Positions 3,329-32,600 of a stretch of 64,000 nucleotides of DNA are shown piece by piece. The position numbers were made by a program, and so were the translations under genes. How positions within the stretch are numbered: position 1 is the first letter of the stretch; each line of letters begins with the position of its first letter. A model generated the notes under the pieces. It worked only from the letters and a program-made list of their open reading frames with translations. It ran no database searches and was not told where the DNA came from. The stretch comes from Trichosphaerium sp. ATCC 40318 (lineage: Eukaryota > Protista > Tubulinea): the NCBI GenBank assembly GCA_038496445.1, contig JALMLS010000015.1, forward strand, positions 1 to 64,000, given 5' to 3'.

Positions 3329-3971
3329 AGGGGTGTTGTTCTTGGTTTAAACTTATATATCTCCGCGTAACTTTGTACATGTAAAAACTGCCATTATGAG
3401 GGCGGTTGCGTTTTTTTTCCTCTACGCCTATGCCAGATCTATAATAAATAAACTTTTGTAAATCGTTTTGACTTACACGTTTTTGTCACATGGAACTGAT
3501 AATGGTGTTGAACTCCTAAAAAGCGACGTTTGGTTGTAACCAGTAAACGTCGTTTAGAGTATCTAGAAGCATATGAAAGAGGTGTCAACACTTTGCTGAA
3601 ATTGTTTAAAAAACACACAGTAGCTAAGGATACACGTTCTTCATTCGATTTTTTTGTCGGTACCAATATTGGACGACTGCGTTTCCTTATACTCACACGC
3701 AAATGCGCATAATATAAATAAAAAAAAACCATGGTTGTTGTGAAATAAACGAGGTAGGTTTATTTTTTTTTCAGGAAATTCCACCAATTTTCAGTCAAAC
3801 TTGAATCGAACTTACTACACTACTTCACAATACAGAACCACACTCGAAATTCGCATGTATAATCCCCAATTGCACCAAACTATTCTAAAAATGTCGTGGC
3901 TATTGCATGAGAGGGTTGTAGAAGAATTGCGCAAAAACCACAATTAAATTTCGATGCAAATGATGATCAAT

Positions 3972-4240
3972 AAAAGGATCTTTTTTCCGTTTAGCTAGTA
4001 GAATACGTCTACTCAGGTTCCGAGCGGCTCCACAGGTCCTCTCAAGAGTACCCTGTTTCACCAAGGGGTAGCAGGGCATACGGAACGGAACGCCCGCAAG
4101 TATAGTAACAATCTGCTTGCAATGCGAGGCTGACGATATTCCCAGCAAGGCTATGGTTGTCTTGTCAGAGTTGTTGGTGGTGATGAGAAAGGCTCTGGTC
4201 GAAAGACAATTTTTGCTATTGTTAGGAATAAACGGGCTTT
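3972..4240 (+). ncRNA. Candidate structured small RNA (snRNA-like, Sm-type site), family unassigned
   Basis: GC-enriched intergenic island with several stems (3985-3991/4084-4090, 3997-4002/4008-4013, 4051-4055/4072-4076, 4096-4100/4116-4120, 4157-4172/4191-4209) followed by AATTTTTG at 4208-4215. Confidence 0.45.
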
Positions 4241-4481
4241 TTGTATTTTTCCTTCATTTTGCCATGTTAAAACTCCGTTATGGCACTTGAATGCAATAAT
4301 ATTGTACGGTGAAATATTTGGAAACGGCTATTTGTGGTTCAGTGAACTGTAGAATTTTCTTCATATTTTTTGGTCAATGACCATGTTTTGCAACGAAAAA
4401 ATTATCGAAACGTACTTCCACTTTGTTGAGGAAGTTATCCAACATCATATCATATTCTAGAACAACAACAAACAATACATC

Positions 4482-5050
4482 ATGAGCGTACTACAAGTCC
4501 AAACACAACTAGATGACGACTGCATCCCAGCATTTGATAAGTGCGTCAAATTTTTTTCTTTTTTCTTCACCACTCATTCCTTGTCTTCTTTTCTTCCTCA
4601 CCGTCTCTTCAATAGATTCAAGATGGGAAAAGGAAGTCCTTACATTGTATACAAGCTTACTGATAATCATTCACGTGTTGTCATTGAAACAAAGGGAAGA
4701 CAAGGAGATGATTGGCAAACACTTGTTGAAGAGCTACCAGAAAATGAACCAAGATATGTCTTATTCTCATACAATTACGATCTTGGATCAGATGGAAAAA
4801 GAACAAAGACTGTATTTCTTTATTGGTGTCCTATGAAGTCCGGTGTAAAAAACAGAATGTTGTACACATGCACCAGGATGTACTTGAAGTCTCTCTTTCA
4901 TGTGCGTTCTTACAAACTTTCCTTTATTTAAACGAAAACGTTTTACCAACTCTTTGTTTGTAGGGTATCTCAGTAAGTATGCAAGCTGGTAGGAAATGTG
5001 ATGTCACAAACGAGTCTGTATTGAATGTTTGTACAAGCAAATTCAGATAA
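4482..5050 (+). CDS. ADF/cofilin (actophorin-like), 3 exons
   Basis: YIVYKL, LPENEPRYVLFSYNY, VFLYWCP..VKNRMLY motifs; stop TAA 5048-5050. Confidence 0.9.
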
Positions 5051-20224: not shown

Positions 20225-21190
20225 TTGTCCGTTTGAAGATATTGTGGTTTCCGTTCTACTACCAGCATTTGGGTAATCCAAATACACTTTGATTACGTCA
20301 GCAACCAGAGGGTCAGTGTCAGGAGCTTGCAAAAAAGACGGTGTTGGATACAAGAAGATCTACATTTATGACATTCCAGACATTTTCAAGATTAGACAGT
20401 ACAATGGTGTAATGAACAATACCATTGTTGTCATGAAAGTAGAGAACAATTTATTGTTTTCTATTATCTGGGTGTCGTAATGTTGATACAGATTTTAGAA
20501 GAAGTACCTCTGAAGCATACAAAGAAAGTAGTGTCATCAATGACTTTGATCTCAAAGAGCTTGCAGGTGTCCACACTATTTGTCTTAACCGTTGTAAACA
20601 TGTGACAGATGAGGTATCAAGGCATTGTCTGGAGTTCATACAATTGACCGTTGGTCGACTTCGGTATTAGATGATGGCGTCATAGCACTAAAGGGAGCTC
20701 ATGATATTAGAGTGGCTTTTTGTAAAAATGTGACAGATGAAGGTATCAAAGCACTTGCTGGTATTCATACCATTGATCTTGCAGCCTGACCCAACGTGAC
20801 AGATAAAGCCATCACAGCAAAGTGTCGTTCATACAATCAATCTAGCGGACACATCAGTAACAGATGACTGTCTCAAAGAACTCAAAGTAGTTCATGCTAT
20901 TTACCTCGGTACTTCAGTGACATATGAAGGTATTAAAGCACTCAAAGGTATTCATACTATTTACCTTGATGATACCTCAGTGACAGATGAAGGTATCAAA
21001 GCACTTGCTGGAGTTCATACTATTCACCTTGGGCGTACATCAGTAACTGATGAAGGCATTGAAGCGCTGGCCGGAGTTCATGTTATTGACCTTTCCCACA
21101 CTTTTGTGACAGACAAAGGTATAAAAGCACTAGTGGGTGCTTACGCCATTTATCTCGAAGGCACTGTGGTATCAGATAAAGGTATACATA
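20225..21190 (+). pseudogene. Degenerate F-box/LRR paralog of the 53240-54693 gene
   Basis: From 20342 it follows the intact gene closely (VGYKKIYIYDIPD..VTDEGIKALAGVHTI) with frameshifts and an in-frame TGA near 20787. Confidence 0.9.
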
Positions 21191-21908
21191 CAACTTTGAT
21201 AGCATTTGTGGGTTGTTATGAAACCAGAATTAGTAGCTCTAAGGTAGACAATCTGGCAATACTGCGCACACAAAATGCAGGCGGTAGGTTTCTATGTTGT
21301 TTTACGAGCACGTGACAAATATCGCTTTTATTGCCACCAAAGTAAACCGTCAAGATTTGTGAGTGACGGATGAAACGTTAAAGGCACACGAAAGATGAGA
21401 ATACTAGGTTTTGAGATATCTGTTTATTTAGGCTGCAAGAACGGTTACAATCTCATGAATGATCTCATGAACTCTCTCATGAAGGTTGAGAATGTTGTCA
21501 GGAATATGCGAGTAATCTGTTTTATGAATTATCTTTAATGTGAATGAGGTCTTGTCAGTCTCCTAATCGTGACAGAGAATACGTGTAAGAGAGACGTGAC
21601 CTTAGTTGTAGGATAACAGCGTGTTTATTAAAGGTTGTTACATAATTCAGAGAATATTACTGTTAATTCAATCGATCAATTGAAATTGAACTGTGTTTAG
21701 AAGCTTCGCCACAGTTTAGTGCGTTCTTTCGTAGAATCATATTGATGCCTAGGCGCTTGTTACTAATAGCTTGTTAGTGACTTGACAGGTGACTGTCTTA
21801 GGAATAAAATAGCGAAAAGATATCAGTTTTCAAAAAACCAGTACAACACGAAATTCGTCCACAATGTTGAATTCTCGAATACGGTATCAAAATCCCAACA
21901 ACACAACA

Positions 21909-23018
21909 ATGCAACGCATAGACTACGACGCATTTTATGAGATTATTGGCTATCTGTCCGGAACAGACGTTTACCGTACTCTCGTCTACGTTTCATCCAA
22001 ATTTCACGCAGACGTGCTCAATGCAAACTCTGGGTTGTGGAAAAAACTGTGTTTTCAAGATTTTGGCTTTGTGGGTTCATCTGAACTCGCATACAAGGAT
22101 AAATGGGTCGGTTTTTACAAATATAAGCACTCAACCTTCGAATACTGCGAAGAAAACATTCACGTACCTCAGACAGCGCCTGGGACAACAAAATTACGCA
22201 TAGTGGATGATTTTTTAACTGGTTTGCTACATGGGACCTCTAAACTCCTTTGCGTGGTTCCTAAGGCGTTTTCGTGGTCTCTCATACGTCTGGTGAGGCT
22301 CTATGGCAACAAGAAACCTGATTTATCAATGATATCAAGTATTTCTTCCCAACTCAACGAAGGTTTGATAGACATCGATATCAAGCTTGCAGACCAGTTC
22401 TCACCACTTCTCGAATGCTTTGAAGGAGGAGAATACGGTCTAAGACTAGTTCAAAGCAGAGAAAAGGAGAAAAAGCCAGTTTATGTAGGAAGCGAACCTG
22501 TTCCTTTTCCAACTTTTGTTCCTTACCGCCAAGGAGGAGACCACACGTACTACCAGCCAGGCGACATCGATAACAATGTGTACGGATGTGCGAACTTGAC
22601 ATACTTCACTCAGAGGATGCATGATAGTGAAGGCAATCCCACAAATCTTTGTTCAGATGAGCGTATACAATATTACAAAAAAAAAATAAGTGAAGGATCA
22701 CGACCTATTATCTTCGCCATACGGCTCAGAGATGATATTATTATTTTGGATGGTCACCATAAGTTCCTAGCTTATAACAGATACTTTAGTGAGCTTGAGC
22801 CACCAATACTATACGTTTTTAAAAGAGGACACAGCGAGAATTCGTGGCAATGGAAACGTTCAAATAATGGTAATTTATTCACGTGGGTTTGGGCAAACAA
22901 AAATCTTAAAAGTAGTCTAACAGATGTCGAAAAGGATATTCTTGATCCAAAAATAGATAGTCTTGATACTATCGTTACTGATCTTAATCTTACCCTGGAG
23001 CATCCACCAAAAAGTTAA
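21909..23018 (+). CDS. Intronless F-box protein with C-terminal ParB/Sulfiredoxin-like domain
   Basis: N-terminal IDYDAFYEIIGYL..LVYVSSKF..LWKKLCFQDF (F-box); C-terminal DERIQYYKKKISEGSRPIIF..IILDGHHKFLAY; the ORF track starts at 21864. Confidence 0.7.
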   Translation: MQRIDYDAFYEIIGYLSGTDVYRTLVYVSSKFHADVLNANSGLWKKLCFQDFGFVGSSELAYKDKWVGFYKYKHSTFEYCEENIHVPQTAPGTTKLRIVDDFLTGLLHGTSKLLCVVPKAFSWSLIRLVRLYGNKKPDLSMISSISSQLNEGLIDIDIKLADQFSPLLECFEGGEYGLRLVQSREKEKKPVYVGSEPVPFPTFVPYRQGGDHTYYQPGDIDNNVYGCANLTYFTQRMHDSEGNPTNLCSDERIQYYKKKISEGSRPIIFAIRLRDDIIILDGHHKFLAYNRYFSELEPPILYVFKRGHSENSWQWKRSNNGNLFTWVWANKNLKSSLTDVEKDILDPKIDSLDTIVTDLNLTLEHPPKS

Positions 23019-23363
23019 CTTAAAAAACCCTTACAAATAAAACACTATTTTGTAGTTACACAGCATTAAGTACTGAATACTCGCAACAAACAACGAGCAA
23101 GAGTGATCCAACTGTTAGTATCACGGTTTACTACTTGAGCAAGAGTACAAAGATGCTCTAGCCTGTCAACAGTGAGCATTGCGAACAAAGACATAAAATA
23201 GTTCTACTGTATTACAAGAGTTTAACAAGCAAGTGACAGAAGGCATAAAGTACATAATTCTGTTCATTTAATACATATTTAACAATGTCAAGCTTGTACA
23301 CATAGTTGAACAGAAGAAAAGCTAGATGGCAGCGGAAGTTTGCTTAAGTAAAGAAATATTAAA

Positions 23364-26004
23364 TTACTTAGCACACGGCTGAGGGACCATGACAGGTTGT
23401 GTGTTACCACTACAGGAATAATGAGATTAGTACTGTTTTGGTATTTTGTGAAAAAATAGTAAGGCGTACGTTAGGTTACTTTTCAAGCCGGCCATTGAAA
23501 TTGCAGATACACTGAGTGCTTTAGCGATATCCGAGTTTTCAACGCATCTTTCAGTTGCTTGATCCATAGACATACAATTCAATACACCATAGAGCATAGG
23601 CACACCTGTTTGTAATTGTGCTTGCATGATACCCTAAAAGAGGGTGACAACTTATTCATAGCAAGAAAAACGTTTCAGATTTTTTGTCAAAAAACCGTTT
23701 GTTAAGCACGTGACCAGGATCAACGTGTGGCATGGTTTCTAGTTTGAGTATTACGTACATTAGAGACTGCTTTAGATATGTATTCAAAGTGTTTTGTCTC
23801 GCCCTTGATGAGGACACCCAAGCAAATGATAGCATCCACGTTTCCACGTTCAGCTACGTATTTGGCTGCAAGAGGAAGTTCAAAAGATCCAGGGACTGTT
23901 ACTTCATCAATATTTGCAAGGTCTACTTTGGATTCTAGCAAACTAGATTTTACTCTGTCTGCTAGCGGGCCTTGAAAACACATGTTAGAATAATTTTTTT
24001 CGCTTGTTTCTTGAGTGTTTGTTTTAAAGCGCACCAACGACAGATTCATTCCAAGCAGTACGCAAGATTGTGAAGCGCATCTTACTAACGTGTTCTGTAT
24101 GTGGTGTAAATAATGGCGCTTCTTTGGCGTGTACATGACGAAGAATACTTTCTGGAACACCTACGATTTTAAATTAGTACCTTTAAAATTAAGCTTTAGC
24201 TTCATCTTGAACTCATTGTGAACTCATTTGTTCAAGTGTACCTTGTTCTTTGAATTTAGATTCCAGGTACTTTGTGTTATGTTCGTGCTTATCTGTTAAG
24301 ATATGTGTTTGCTTTGAATAAAGAGAACCTAATGCTTTTACTTTCTTAGGATTATTTGTCAGTATATCAACACTTTTGATCCCCAAGTCCTTCAAAATTG
24401 CAACAGGTATTGTATAATCTCTCAAATCCTTAGGAAATCCCAAAGCCTCATTTGCCTACACGAAATTTTAAAATGAGTGCCGGTACTGAACCAGAAATGT
24501 TTGAAATTGGAAAGGGTTTATCAAAATCTTGCTTGTTGTTTTGTTCATTTTATTTACCTTGTACGTATCAAGTCCTTCTGATTGTAATTTGTATGCTTTC
24601 ACCTTTTGCAAAAGACCAATACCACGACCTTCATGACCTCCAACATATATAACTACACCGCTACCTAAAAACCTGAGTTTAGCAACATTTATTATTTTCC
24701 TTTTTTATTCTTACCTCTCTTATTGATTATTTCCACAGCACGAACAAATTGTGGCATACAATCACAACGAATAGAACCCAGGATGTGGCCTGTAAAGCAT
24801 TCAGAGTGCATGCGTGTCAGAACGTCTTCCTGGCCAGAAACTTGTAAAAAATAAGATGCCTTGCGAAACTCTTCAATAGTTTGTTAATAGTATCTCACCT
24901 GATCCCTTCATGAGTACACTGTGATATTCACTCCCGTTTTTAGCCTCATATAGCTTTAAAGTCCAGTTTCCGTAGAAGATATCATTGAATTTAACTGGAA
25001 TTTCACACTCTGCGACTTTTGAGACTAATGATTCTGGACTCTGCGACAAAGCTGATACAAATGGTCCTAGGTTATTCTAGAAAAATAATATTAGTAACGT
25101 ATGAACGTTACAGACACTTTAATTTACAAAACGCAGTAATTAACCGCTTCTACCGAAAATAAAAAACTAATCAAGTTAAAATTGATAAAAAACCCACGCA
25201 CTATTGTTCTATAACGCGCCAATTGCTCTATATTTATGATAGGTAATTTCAATTTTTTTGCCAAGTCTTCACAAGCTGGGAGTCTCATCATAGTTCCATC
25301 ATCATGTTGTAACTCACATACAAGTCCTTTAAAAATTAATTTAAGAGGTTGATATGGTAAATTCGAACATACCAACTGGACGACATTTGGAGAGGCGACA
25401 CAAGTCTAATGCTGCTTCTGTGTGCCCTCTACGCTCTAAAACACCTCCCTCACGAGCCTATAAATAAATTAAACGGGCTGTTTTAAAGTTGGAAAGTAAA
25501 CAAAGCACGTGCCACTAGAGGGAAGATGTGACCTGGTTTTTGCATGTCACCTGCTAATGTATTTGGGTCTGCAAGTGCGTTTATTGTTAAACAGCGGTTC
25601 TTTGCTGATACGCCGGTGCCTATTTGGTGAAATTGTAAGTTCAGACATAAATATAATTACCCCGACATTACTATGTAACGAGACGAGCGTAAAAAGCTTT
25701 TTAATACAATAAAAAACGCACCTGCGTCTTTATGATCTGTTGTAATCGTAAACGCCGTTTGGTGAGCGTCTGTGTTATGCACAACCATTGGAGTGAGTCC
25801 TAGGCTGAGTGCCCGTTGTTTAAGCATGGGAGTGCATAGAATACCAGTCGTATAGCGTAAAATTGTAACTATGTCACTCTCTTTCGCGTGCTCTGCCGCC
25901 ATAATGAAGTCTCCTTCGTTTTCGCGGTCTTCATCATCCATAACAACAACAATACCACCATCGCGAAAGTGTTCTAGTGCGTCTTGAATAGAAGAGAAAG
26001 ACAT
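23364..26004 (-). CDS. Trifunctional riboflavin biosynthesis protein: DHBP synthase (RibB) + GTP cyclohydrolase II (RibA) + lumazine synthase (RibH)
   Basis: [10 protein letters not shown] and PGHIFPL|[15 protein letters not shown] (RibB); [28 protein letters not shown] (RibA); [34 protein letters not shown] (RibH); continuous frame after splicing. Confidence 0.9.
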
Positions 26005-26170
26005 GTTTCTTCAAAGCGTTTGTAAAGTGTAAGAATCGGCGGAATTAGGTCGTCAAATTGTTCGAGTTTGTGCGAGCGCTGGTCAAGTTTTGTCGTATTA
26101 ATTGTCATTCAAAAACCCTACATAAAGAAGCTATCTGTTGTTGTAACTCTAACATGCGATATAGTCAGAA

Positions 26171-28219: not shown

Positions 28220-29543
28220 TCACGCTATTATACATGTACTTTGATTGCTTGTTTTACTTGTATCATTATGTTTTGGTATCGAAATATCGTCGAGGCATAC
28301 GTTGAACTGGGTTAAGATAAATGTTTGCCAGGGTCTTGGGATCATGCCCCAATGCTCATGTTTAGGTGCATCTTTCGTAACCAATCTGAATTCTAGTGGC
28401 CCATTTACAATGACATCAATATCTTTGCTCCATGAGAATAAGCATCCACCTGTCCATGATTCGAAGGAATTCAGTTCTATGATGTAGACATTATCATTGT
28501 TATCAACATAGAAGTCTATAACATAATTCTCATGATTTGATAGCGCTTGTTTGAAATGTTTTTCAAAAGCTGATTTAACAACCTGTTGCAGGTGATCCTG
28601 TACAAAAGGCGTAAGGTTAAGAAAAGTCAACTTTCAGAGAAAAGTTAAAAATAAACCGTGCCTTCTTCGTTACAAGAGATTCATAGCAGGTTAAATAGTC
28701 GTACTGAGATAACGCGTTCAGCTTATTATTGCATACAAATCCCCTAAATTCGCGTTCAGGATGCTCCACTAGCACATCATCCCATGCGCGTAATACAATA
28801 CAAGTGGATAGTCCATACTGCAACAATTTATGGATGCCCATAAGATCTTCTCGCACCCGTCTACTCTGACCTAGAAGGCAAATCGCTTGCTTGCCTTCAA
28901 CATTATTAGGCACGTGATTAATTTAATTTTAGAATCTTACCAGTTGTGATTCTGGACGTTTTTGCAAGAGCAATGAGTAGCCCACTGAGTGCTTCTTTCG
29001 TTGCTACGGTTGGCTTGGCATCATCGTTACACTTTGATAGCCTATTTCTATCATTAACTGGGTTGAAGATGTATTTGTACCTCTTGATTTCGTCTACTAT
29101 AGATTGTTTTACATTATCATCATCAAATTCGAGAGATAGAGCGTCTTTCGGGCTTCGTGAATCAAGTTTTATGAATACACCATTGTCAAAGTTTGACAAT
29201 GCCGTGTCTATTCTTTTTGTGAGGCTACTGAGCAACTCAAGGATCTCTGCGTCAGTGATGGTATCAACGTTGCCGTTGGCATCTGTGAGAGATAGTAAAG
29301 CGTTGACATCGTTAACGTCAAGTTGTACAAACTCCGTTTTAAATGTATGGGTGCTAAGCTGATTGTACCAGCTTGTTATGCCAAAAGCGAGCCTATACTT
29401 TTGTTGGCAGTACACCCCTATGTCATTTTCTGGTACGCCTACGAGATTTAGTACGTGTAGCACTTGCTATTGTACATACCCGCTTTGATCGCGTCCTCAG
29501 GCTTAGGTACTATCGTAGAGGTATTTTTAAACGATCTAGCCAT
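28220..29543 (-). CDS. Cdc123/D123-like ATP-grasp protein ending in a CaaX motif
   Basis: FIKLDSRSPKD, EFRGFVCNNKLNALSQY, YVIDF..IIELNSF..GGCLFSW..EFR; C-terminus TCIIA*. Confidence 0.85.
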
Positions 29544-29659: not shown

Positions 29660-32600
29660 ATGTCAAAGAACAAGCATCGCTTTGTGTTTGTTGGTCCAAA
29701 TGCGTTATTATTGAAATTATTGGCCGGATATGAAGCATGCTACAAACAGACCGAAAACAAGAAAGGCAAAAGCAAGAAAGATAAAGCGCCTGAAAAACCG
29801 ACAGCACCAGATGAGGTGATGCAAACTGCCCTGAATATTACATACAAAGTAACGAAACGACCAAATAAGAAGGCAAAAATAAAAAGAGTGAAAGCGGACG
29901 TTTTTCTTATTGGAGGTACCAAATGTAAGGTAAGTGCTTTAAAACTGACCCTTACGCAGACCAAATACCAAAGACACAACGGGAAGAGACTTACAGGCGG
30001 CTAAAAAAGAACAAGACATCGCTTTTATTTTTTAGCTTTTCATACGATGACCGTAGCTCATACGATAAGATACTCAATATGGTACAAACTACCTGTTTTT
30101 TTTACACTTTACAAGTGTACTAACCAAAAAAAATACAGTGGGACGAAGAACTTACGGGAAAGGTGGAGGCAGCTAGGTTCGTATAACACCGTTAACGCGT
30201 TTTTTTTAACTGACACGCAAATAGATTACTTGTTGGGTACAAATCTTCAAAACCGTCTGTTATCACCCCTGCGGAGGTTCGTTATATAGCTAATAATGTA
30301 TTTTCGCAGTTATAAGCTTTCCTCGGGTTGTTTTGTGTACACAAAAAGTCGTACATTGAAAAAAGCCAAGGCTAGAAGGTTTTTTTTTTTGGTTTGACTT
30401 GTTTCAAAAAAAAAAAAGAAATAATGTGGTGTAAAACACAAGACACACAAAAATCTTTCTCCTAAACCGCTTTATTTTAGGCAAAGACGTTGGCTCAAAC
30501 TATATGTGCTGCAGATAGCATCATTATTAAGGAAAGCGATACAATGTCATTTGTGGGTCTTTTTGAGTATAGTTATCTAACGTTTCGACCTTCTGCTATA
30601 ATGAAATGTTTTTCTGTTGATAGTACGCGCTATAATGTCAAAGTGTACGCACAATTTCGCTAATGTTTTTCTCCTAAGATATCACAATTCCACTATTATT
30701 TAGACGCTTGTCAAAGCAACAAACCGACGACGTACGTTTTTTTTGTGTACAAAAAACCCAAATTTCTTTAATTTGTTTGTGGCTGTTGTCACAATCCATT
30801 GGTCTTCACTTGTGTTGTTTTTTTTTTCTGAACAAAAAACGTGCACGTTTTGCTTTCATGAAGATTTGGTCTCTTGTATCTATTTTTAATTTTTAAACCG
30901 CTTTACAAAAAATTATTTAGCGGTTAAACAATTATGTTTACTAATGTTAAACTGGTTTTTTGTGGATAAACCGTTAACTTTTTTTTTGTAGTGTTTATCA
31001 GCTGTTGATCTTTCCTTCAGTGGTTGGAAGCGTGAAGGTATTTTAGGGTTTGCTCGCGGTGAAGATGAGCGTATTACATCAAAACAAACATTTGAACAGC
31101 TCGTTGTATCAACACCAAAAGAAAAATTGACAAAGAAAAATATGGAACAACTCTTACTTGTTAAGGCTGGCCTTGTCAATTTTGATCCACTCTATCTAAA
31201 CGAAGACTTTTTAAAAACACTTCATACATTAGTTTTGAGTGTAAACAACATTAAGGAAGTATTTTTTAGCGGATTCAAGTAAGTGATAGACAATTACTAA
31301 ATGTAGACTTTTTTCGATATTACCTTTTTAAGTACTGATAAATCCAAAAAAAGGGGAAACAAGAATGGGATCGCTTTACATAATCTTTATGAGCTATATT
31401 TGTCTCATAATGTGCTATCAAAACTTCCACGTGATATATCATCGCTAAGGAGTTTACGTATTCTTGATTTAAATTCAAACCATATCGTCAAACTACCAAG
31501 CACACTTTTTAGTTTATGCACCCTTGAACGGCTTGACGTTTCAATGAATCAGCTGGAGCAAATACCTCCTGCTGTTGGACAGCTGTCAAATCTTGTTTAC
31601 CTTTCACTTGGTAATAATAGAATCGAGAAAGTACCTGTAGAGCTCTCTCGGTGTGTTAAGTTGCGAGAATTACATCTTCAAAACAACAAAATCAGAAAAC
31701 TTCCATTGACTCTTGGATACTTGAAGACGTCTCTTAAAAGGTTTGATATTAGCAATAATCCACTCAACCCCAAACACTTACCAAAGGAGCTTCATAAGCG
31801 TACGTGATCTGTAATTGTAAATAACGAAGTAACTTGAATCCAGGACCACATGATGTGCTAGAATTCTTGCACCAAATGTTGAAGGGCGGAGAAAAATGTT
31901 ATAGAACAAAGTTGATGTTTGTTGGACAACGTATGTTAAGACAGCATTGATTTGACGTTTGTACTCAACCTAAAATTATAGAAAACGTTGGTAAAACGAC
32001 TTGCTTGAATTCTTTCTTGAGACACGTTAACAAGAGAGGTGCTCGGTTAAGAGAATCTCAGTCAGCTCGTGGTCTACAACCAAATATGGACCCACTTTCT
32101 ACGGATGGTGTAGATATAAGTGAGATCACTCTACAAGCACAGCACTGCCTTGCAAATGGCATTGCGGAGAAGGAGAATGCTGATATTACTTTCTCAGCAT
32201 GGGATTTTGCTGGTACGACAGAGTTTCCTTGTAAGGAGGTCAAGTTTTTAATGCTTTTGTGTTAGGTCAAGAGGTTTATTACTCAACCCATAGCTTTTTC
32301 TTATCAGAGAGATCAATTTTTTTGGTGATTTATGATCTACGATACTCTCCTAGAGAATCTAGGGTTGACTACTGGCTCCATTCTGTTCGTTCTCAAGCTC
32401 CTAAATCACCAATTATTTTGGTATGTTTTTTTGTTTGTACACGTGTGGTTAATACAAAAATAAGGTTGGTACGCATTTGGATAGCCCAAAGGTTAACAAA
32501 AAGGAAGCCAAGGCTAGCATGGAGAGATTGATGCAAGTAAAGAGGTACGTGTTGATTACTAATGCCCATCAAGAGATTTTTTCTAAAAACCAATACTAGG

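Follow-up and report, generated by a model that had tools for sequence, protein, structure and literature searches.

Positions 1 to 64,000 of the forward strand of contig JALMLS010000015.1 from Trichosphaerium sp. ATCC 40318 (assembly GCA_038496445.1), here called the window, carry a gene in which three riboflavin pathway enzymes are joined in a single reading frame. This RibB-RibA-RibH gene lies on the minus strand from 26004 (ATG) to 23364 (TAA) and comprises 12 exons and 11 spliceosomal introns. With a probability of roughly 0.87, we consider it to be one nuclear, intron-bearing gene that yields one mRNA and one trifunctional enzyme of 590 residues, composed of 3,4-dihydroxy-2-butanone 4-phosphate (DHBP) synthase (RibB), GTP cyclohydrolase II (RibA), and lumazine synthase (RibH). 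The complete coding region (23364..26004) is supported by the joints of RNA contigs, by an identical database protein and by three Pfam domains.

Evidence for a Single Transcript and Protein

Transcription was followed in assembled contigs from four public RNA runs (X1-X4), which represent at most three samples, since X3 and X4 stem from the same one. The contigs of the locus are intron-free in all four runs and are therefore derived from cDNA. If the exons are joined as these contigs dictate, a coding sequence of 1773 nucleotides (nt) without internal stop is obtained, and its translation of 590 amino acids (aa) exactly matches P0001, a transcript product found in MMETSP and JGI. A single X3 contig (record 8, 1738 nt) spans positions 23503-26028 with all introns removed and reaches all three domains. 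It continues past 26028 into 20 letters, the reverse complement of which we take to be the end of a SMART template-switch oligonucleotide. Such an adaptor at the end of the contig places the mRNA 5' end at 26028 and leaves a 5' untranslated region of 24 nt in front of the ATG (26005..26028). At the opposite end, contigs of X1 and X4 run beyond the stop codon to about position 23331.

The RibA and RibH parts are separated by a phase-1 GT-AG intron of 81 nt (24161..24241), which is removed exactly and in frame in X1, X2, X3, and X4. The last base of exon 8 is the G at 24242, while the intron begins with gtacac, contains tactaat and ends with cgtag; downstream, the frame stays open through a short linker of about 27 residues into the lumazine synthase. 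The initial annotation, made from the DNA letters alone, had described this junction, had set the outer limits of the gene at 26004 and 23364, and had proposed that three domains share one spliced mRNA and one open reading frame (ORF). The junction features were found at their coordinates on the minus strand, the limits proved correct by RNA joints and translation, and the stop-free frame identical to P0001 confirms the single product. An isoform restricted to RibBA had been suggested as well. Retention of the 81-nt intron indeed gives an in-frame TGA after ...GTLEQMSSQ (ORF 24213-24443). However, no contig in the four runs covers the intron, with the limit that assembled contigs drop rare forms, and the depth in the bin of this intron equals that predicted from the exon fraction.

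Three Conserved Enzyme Domains

Based on Pfam, the DHBP synthase (PF00926) occupies residues 7-197 and matches the entire profile (positions 1-191 of 191; E-value 4.5e-74, 248.5 bits at a cut-off of 26.4). The GTP cyclohydrolase II (PF00925) follows at residues 234-380 (1.6e-52, 177.8 bits) and the lumazine synthase (PF00885) at residues 436-572 (profile positions 2-138 of 139; 8.6e-40, 136.3 bits). We further aligned 24 triple fusions, namely the window protein and 23 homologs (alignment A1). In this alignment, 51 columns are invariant in all 24 proteins and span the signature motifs of all three enzymes, among them RENEGD, GHTE, C274/C285/C287, EGRGIG, W445-N446, VPG..E.P, H511, and R550. 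For RibB, the motifs RENEGD, TGVS, PGH.FPL, and GHTE are invariant or nearly so, and the window protein has them all. The zinc-binding cysteines C274, C285, and C287 of RibA as well as E313-G318 are invariant, while W445, N446, V476, G478, P483, T509, H511, and R550 of RibH are invariant or nearly so. Only 8 residues of the window protein differ from columns that are nearly invariant, each time conservatively. The sole deviation near the RibB motifs is D102N, and the Rhizamoeba homolog has N102 too. Pfam matches and invariant columns are thus in agreement with the earlier statement that the catalytic motifs of all three domains are present.

The AlphaFold2 model calculated with A1 as alignment has a mean predicted local distance difference test score (pLDDT) of 89.9, and only residues 207-214, a loop encoded within exon 5, fall below 50. 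In Foldseek comparisons, the domains overlay solved structures of RibB, RibA, and RibBA at a target template modeling (TM) score of about 0.9. The RibB fold lies within a root-mean-square deviation of 1.1-1.4 Å of solved RibB structures (target TM about 0.9) and the RibA fold reaches a target TM of 0.93 to Escherichia coli RibA (2bz0). Of the solved structures matched, none covers all three domains in one chain; Mycobacterium tuberculosis RibA2 (4i14) extends furthest, over residues 4-380.

Outside the catalytic domains, the fusions share a K-E-x-P-x-x-L-P stretch upstream of the RibH core. A C-terminal tail of the form P(M/L)(L/V)(Q/P)PC plus 1-3 residues occurs in 34 of 78 fused proteins (residues 577-590 of the window protein). 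Its carriers include, besides the window protein, those of Physarum, Balamuthia, Rhizamoeba, Stenamoeba, and Dracoamoeba, while the tail is absent from euglenid, virus-like and bacterial-like members, a distribution in line with an amoebozoan source of the window gene. AlphaFold2 predicts confident strands in both the tail (577-585) and the linker (420-428). The window protein lacks an N-terminal targeting extension and is therefore presumably cytosolic.

Occurrence of the Fusion

A search of the 70-residue RibH exon against 1.84 billion representative proteins retrieved several proteins of 590-650 aa with a C-terminal RibH. With the full-length protein, about 65 clusters combining PF00926, PF00925, and PF00885 were listed at 38-50% identity. 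The architecture occurs in Amoebozoa, euglenids, a cercozoan, bdelloid rotifers, and giant viruses. Amoeba members are found in Arcella intermedia (UniRef A0A6B2KZ31), Physarum polycephalum, and Balamuthia mandrillaris (where it is called "RibBA, variant 2"); further members come from Rhizamoeba saxonica, Stenamoeba stenopodia, Dracoamoeba jomungandri, Euglena gracilis, and Eutreptiella braarudii. The closest relatives of the window protein are transcripts of several amoebozoan lineages (45-50% identity). UniProt and AlphaFold DB hold further fusions, including L8H1N9 (660 aa), which aligns over residues 1-576. In IMG/VR, four contigs contain the full fusion without introns (L003-L005, L008), one of them as an ORF of 572 aa with 41% identity over residues 5-568 (L003). 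Two metagenomic contigs with the fusion are giant-virus-like, being gene-dense and intronless.

In the literature, the Orpheovirus protein ORPV_666 was already named trifunctional "RibA+RibB+RibH" and reported as homologous to proteins of Indivirus, Bacillus subtilis, and Acanthamoeba castellanii Neff (Andreani et al., 2018, PMC5786535). Given this mention, the clusters and the database entries, the architecture is neither unusual nor new, contrary to what the initial annotation had assumed. The same annotation had added that its novelty would be lost if the architecture were widespread and already characterized. It is widespread and noted in print, but our literature search retrieved no biochemical or structural study of any RibBA-RibH fusion. 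A pathway review from 2026 names no fusions other than RibBA and RibD, and among the literature found only the Orpheovirus genome paper (PMC5786535) notes the architecture.

Several family members deserve mention in their own right. Rotaria sordida and Rotaria sp. Silwood1 and Silwood2 carry the fusion (P0195 cluster), which would fit horizontal transfer into bdelloid rotifers. A RefSeq model of Schistocerca gregaria on a 218-kb contig has it too (XP_049848135.1, P0206), which could be either transfer or contamination. Other riboflavin genes are found near some copies. On one giant-virus-like contig, an mRNA-capping methyltransferase, RecQ and a kinase stand beside a divergent RibE-RibD fusion. 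A giant-virus or giant-virus-like JGI contig bears the intronless triple fusion head-to-head with a RibE-RibD fusion of 572 aa, so that two genes cover five pathway activities (P0201), and on a giant-virus or giant-virus-like contig a Lum_binding gene lies 3 kb from the triple fusion (L001). In some proteins the RibH part is repeated. A transcript of Papus ankaliazontas encodes RibBA followed by five DMRL_synthase domains (P0008, 1291 aa), and a 522-kb ENA contig encodes RibBA followed by four (P0002, 1147 aa), while P0003 (327 aa) is a free-standing tandem pair of lumazine synthases. Five such repeats within a single polypeptide might assemble into a pentamer made of one chain; the weakly scoring repeats may be degenerate. 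The predicted ENA protein P0038 (1262 aa) combines Lum_binding (RibE), deaminase, RibD_C, DHBP synthase, GTP cyclohydrolase II, and lumazine synthase. Two further predicted proteins add RibD_C (P0196, 880 aa; P0217, 746 aa); all three may be real or merged gene models. Two candidates were rejected, as P0015 (a Vallitalea DUF4073 protein of 5070 aa) and P0103 gave weak repetitive matches and are not lumazine synthases.

Relationships and Origin

The relationships of the RibH part were inferred from a quick maximum-likelihood tree of 139 RibH domains, which is unrooted, based on a short domain, has many long branches and leaves 63 of 135 forks open. One starred branch (95) has on one side 64 fused RibH domains, including that of the window protein, together with one "unfused" Balamuthia gene model, possibly the fused gene split in modeling. 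On the other side stand 73 free-standing RibH proteins and one bacterial-like fused protein. With moderate confidence, the window RibH domain belongs with those of other fusions and not with free-standing RibH. It does not group with bacterial RibH in this tree. At the level of identity, it shares 47-51% with diatom and other MMETSP sequences and about 40% with bacterial RibH; it is closest to eukaryote-type lumazine synthases, and among solved structures fungal enzymes match it best. For the RibBA part, identity to RibBA of Firmicutes amounts to 46-48%, about as much as to other eukaryotic fusions.

A widespread bacterial fusion was considered as well but not confirmed. A search with P0212, a fused protein of actinobacterial appearance, yielded 80 loci of Solirubrobacterales/Actinomycetota (aligned over residues 1-592), which mostly turned out to be two adjacent genes. 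Of 67 bacterial loci, 59 have a RibBA frame that stops ahead of the RibH part; in the other 8, one open frame spans both, some of these frames probably being spurious in GC-rich DNA. In one solirubrobacterial locus, ribBA and ribH overlap by 4 nt (ATGA, 4326-4329; L037), and in another the two frames overlap as well (L038, region 3786-4811). With such overlaps, a single-base frame change would fuse both genes. Since ribBA and ribH are adjacent and often overlapping in Solirubrobacterales, fusion of neighboring operon genes is plausible as a general route. The initial annotation had derived the window gene from a fused bacterial ribBA-ribH operon that later gained introns, but the present data do not single out such a fusion as the source of the eukaryotic family. 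The best explanation for the window gene is that it belongs to an old and widespread RibB-RibA-RibH fusion family of Amoebozoa, euglenids, other protists, and giant viruses.

Weighing of Alternatives

Some of our data weigh against one gene with one trifunctional product. In run X1, the contig of the 3' part has a depth of 29.5 and that of the 5' part only 7.3, a difference of about fourfold, which may reflect 3' bias or extra 3' transcripts. The RNA contigs are assemblies and not single long reads, so that minor intron-retaining or RibH-only transcripts could escape, and expression is seen at the RNA rather than the protein level. The predicted TM score (pTM) of the AlphaFold2 model is 0.45, which means well-folded domains of undefined mutual placement, and the oligomeric state and the channeling of DHBP are pure inference. 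The X1 depths in particular would suit a locus that makes two proteins, a RibBA ending at the TGA of the retained intron and a lumazine synthase starting at M436 (the Met of MRFTIL), with the fused frame being incidental or minor. The retained intron would supply not only the stop but also a natural-looking RibA C-terminus, and an ATG is present at the start of the RibH core. However, the initial annotation had itself pointed to transcripts ending near 24213 and a separate lumazine synthase from MRFTIL as the finding that would speak against the fusion, and what we see is splicing of this intron in every run. In addition, M436 is not kept as Met: its column holds Leu in 18 of the 23 homologs and Val, Ile, Lys, or Asp in the rest, and the window protein alone has Met. 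The alignment to Magnaporthe grisea lumazine synthase (1c41) begins at TPHTEHVSK, 9 residues upstream of M436, which places M436 inside the RibH N-terminal region, downstream of a conserved stretch. The gap between stop and ATG is only 120 nt and leaves no room for a promoter, and the intronless homologs in giant-virus contigs are single ORFs. M436 is accordingly not a conserved start, and separate translation of RibH is unlikely; the two-protein scenario as a whole is very improbable.

It is also conceivable that the fusion is real but one of its domains is dead. Capsid-forming lumazine synthases of bacteria carry a G(T/G)K(A/H)GN-type motif, and the C-terminal helix region of the window RibH lacks it; the DHBP synthase part has N in place of D102. 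One domain might act as a catalytically inactive scaffold, with a precedent in the plant RIBA paralogs, as Arabidopsis RIBA2 and RIBA3 each lost one activity (PMC3509567). Nevertheless, the signature residues of all three domains that are invariant in the 24 fusions are kept in the window protein, its eight deviations are conservative, with N102 common to the Rhizamoeba homolog, and in the neighborhood of the gene, as far as the window extends, there is no other riboflavin gene to replace a lost activity. We consider a dead domain improbable. The remaining alternative concerns the history of the gene, which might have been acquired recently from a giant virus or a bacterium instead of being an ancestral protist gene. 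Intronless copies on giant-virus contigs, the similarity of the RibBA part to Firmicutes RibBA and the rotifer copies that look like transfers would all fit. In contrast, the gene contains 11 spliceosomal introns, its GC content (0.37-0.39) is like that of its surroundings, its nearest relatives are amoebozoan transcripts, and it shares the C-terminal PC tail with these amoebozoan relatives, while viral and bacterial copies lack it. The direction of transfer between virus and host is not read from an unrooted tree with this many open forks. Recent acquisition is accordingly very unlikely, and we retain a single ancestral protist gene for a trifunctional enzyme as the preferred reading.

Predicted Catalysis and Assembly

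In such a trifunctional enzyme, RibB would convert ribulose-5-phosphate to DHBP, RibA would catalyze the first step of the pyrimidine branch, and RibH would condense DHBP with 5-amino-6-ribitylaminouracil to 6,7-dimethyl-8-ribityllumazine. The fusion protein would hence catalyze both entry reactions of riboflavin synthesis plus the condensation that uses one of their products. RibD and the phosphatase, the intermediate enzymes of the other branch, are not part of it. The fusion would fix a stoichiometry of 1:1:1 and place the producer of DHBP beside its consumer. A DHBP source near RibH and the fixed stoichiometry are the likely benefits, while true channeling is hypothetical.

The active sites of lumazine synthase lie between neighboring subunits of a pentamer, whereas DHBP synthase and GTP cyclohydrolase II each act as a homodimer. 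With pentameric RibH and dimeric RibB and RibA in one chain, the active oligomer needs 5-fold as well as 2-fold contacts. All interfaces would be satisfied at the lower end by two pentamers forming a decamer and at the upper end, among regular assemblies, by a 60-mer, so that by analogy with the separate enzymes a higher-order assembly is likely. In known lumazine synthase particles the N-terminus lies on the outer surface, and RibBA dimers would consequently decorate the particle from outside rather than be enclosed. A nanocompartment in the sense of encapsulation, as raised by the initial annotation, is unlikely on these grounds, while RibH as a scaffold for the upstream enzymes is plausible. 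One might speculate that the active enzyme is a closed particle, either a D5 decamer or an icosahedral 60-mer with RibBA dimers outside, in which the strand preceding RibH and the PC tail might serve as a lineage-specific clasp in amoebozoans. This idea is tentative and, in our view, rather doubtful. If true, it would represent a lumazine synthase cage decorated with enzymes in nature, a kind of particle not described so far.

In terms of annotation, the locus is settled as a single gene for a single protein, with all exon coordinates exact and the 5' end mapped. Taken by itself, the window gene contributes little to biology, because its fusion is frequent among amoebae, euglenids, and giant viruses and already in print. 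Of interest at the family level is how a chain that needs both pentamer and dimer contacts assembles and whether DHBP is channeled. Lumazine synthase is widely used as nanoparticle scaffold, and a natural version with two enzymes per subunit would interest structural and synthetic biologists. Having the shortest linker among the aligned amoebozoan members and a confident model, the window protein is a reasonable candidate for assembly work.

Exons, Introns, and Genomic Surroundings

All exons lie on the minus strand. Exon 1 (25722..26004) encodes the N-terminal half of DHBP synthase, residues 1-94 (PF00926, 1.5e-29; RNA joint 25618/25721), and exon 2 (25513..25619) continues this domain (TGVS...PGHIFPLV) as judged from RNA joints and identity to P0001. 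The second intron (25458..25512) is of the GC-AG type and therefore has a non-GT donor. It comprises 55 nt that are skipped in all four runs, and GC..AG is the sole register that fits the allowed shift and reproduces P0001. A GT-AG version of 58 nt was ruled out, as the RNA joints skip 55 nt. DHBP synthase is completed by exon 3 (25373..25457; RNA joints and P0001 identity) and exon 4 (25202..25326), which holds its C-terminal end (PF00926 positions 155-191). Exon 5 (24899..25076) covers the inter-domain stretch and the start of GTP cyclohydrolase II (RNA joints, Pfam, and P0001 identity). The zinc site of this enzyme (HSEC...CDC) is encoded by exon 6 (24715..24840; PF00925, 4.5e-10; invariant C274/C285/C287) and the HEGRGIG motif by exon 7 (24558..24664; RNA joints, alignment, and P0001 identity). 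Exon 8 (24242..24455) contributes the C-terminal part, ending ...KFKEQ G (PF00925, 5.7e-13).

Downstream of the 81-nt intron, exon 9 (24035..24160) encodes residues 409-450, which comprise the linker and the N-terminal strand of lumazine synthase with M436 (alignment to M. grisea 1c41). The lumazine synthase core resides in exon 10 (23759..23970; PF00885, 3.1e-21) and the C-terminal helices in exon 11 (23470..23633; PF00885, 4.4e-08; RNA joint 23409/23470). The last intron (23410..23469) is set by this same joint, which excluded a donor at 23479 (the intron being 23469-23410). Exon 12 (23364..23409) encodes the C-terminal tail ...VMVPQPCAK followed by TAA (RNA joints and P0001 identity). Run X2, which has a different coded organism label and dates from 2024, likewise delivered the gene in spliced form, differing at three bases (23922, 23936, 25948) and with the joint 23972/24037 displaced by three bases and bearing non-canonical ends, probably due to a related strain plus an alignment shift.

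The window contains no riboflavin gene cluster; the neighboring ORFs encode leucine-rich repeat (LRR) proteins, a D123-like gene, and products without Pfam match. An intronless ORF of 384 aa without Pfam match (21864-23018, plus strand) stands tail-to-tail with the rib gene, about 350 nt from its stop codon. Two ORF fragments of the D123 (CDC123) family at 28220-29463 on the minus strand are probably parts of a spliced gene downstream of the studied region. LRR-repeat ORFs are located at 20917-21315 and 31400-31807.

Comparison with Known Systems

The same trifunctional RibA+RibB+RibH make-up is known from Orpheovirus ORPV_666 and A. castellanii Neff (PMC5786535). Compared to the viral copies, which have no tail, the window gene possesses 11 introns, a linker of about 27 residues, and a ...QPC tail. 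Bifunctional RibBA proteins such as M. tuberculosis RibA2 (4I14), B. subtilis RibA, and plant RIBA1 show the same order of DHBP synthase and then GTP cyclohydrolase II as well as the same motifs; residues 4-380 of the window protein align to M. tuberculosis RibA2 (4i14) with an E-value of 3.2e-89. However, RibBA proteins end after the cyclohydrolase, whereas the window chain continues into a full lumazine synthase.

For the RibH part, the best solved matches are the pentameric enzymes of M. grisea (1C41, 98.5 bits) and Schizosaccharomyces pombe (1KYV, about 90 bits). Both share with it the Trp of the (A/S)WN motif and an N-terminal lead-in before the first strand. The alignments to these fungal lumazine synthases end at residue 552, short of the last helices, while those to the capsid-forming enzymes of B. 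subtilis, spinach, and Aquifex reach residues 572-575. In contrast to the fungal enzymes, the window RibH is fused at its N-terminus and bears an extra C-terminal tail.

In the heavy riboflavin synthase of B. subtilis, a capsid of 60 RibH subunits encloses a RibE trimer (PMC8414670), which sets a precedent for lumazine synthase as the core of a multi-enzyme riboflavin complex. There, the partner is a downstream enzyme held non-covalently inside the capsid, whereas the partners of the window RibH are upstream enzymes that are covalently attached to its N-terminus.

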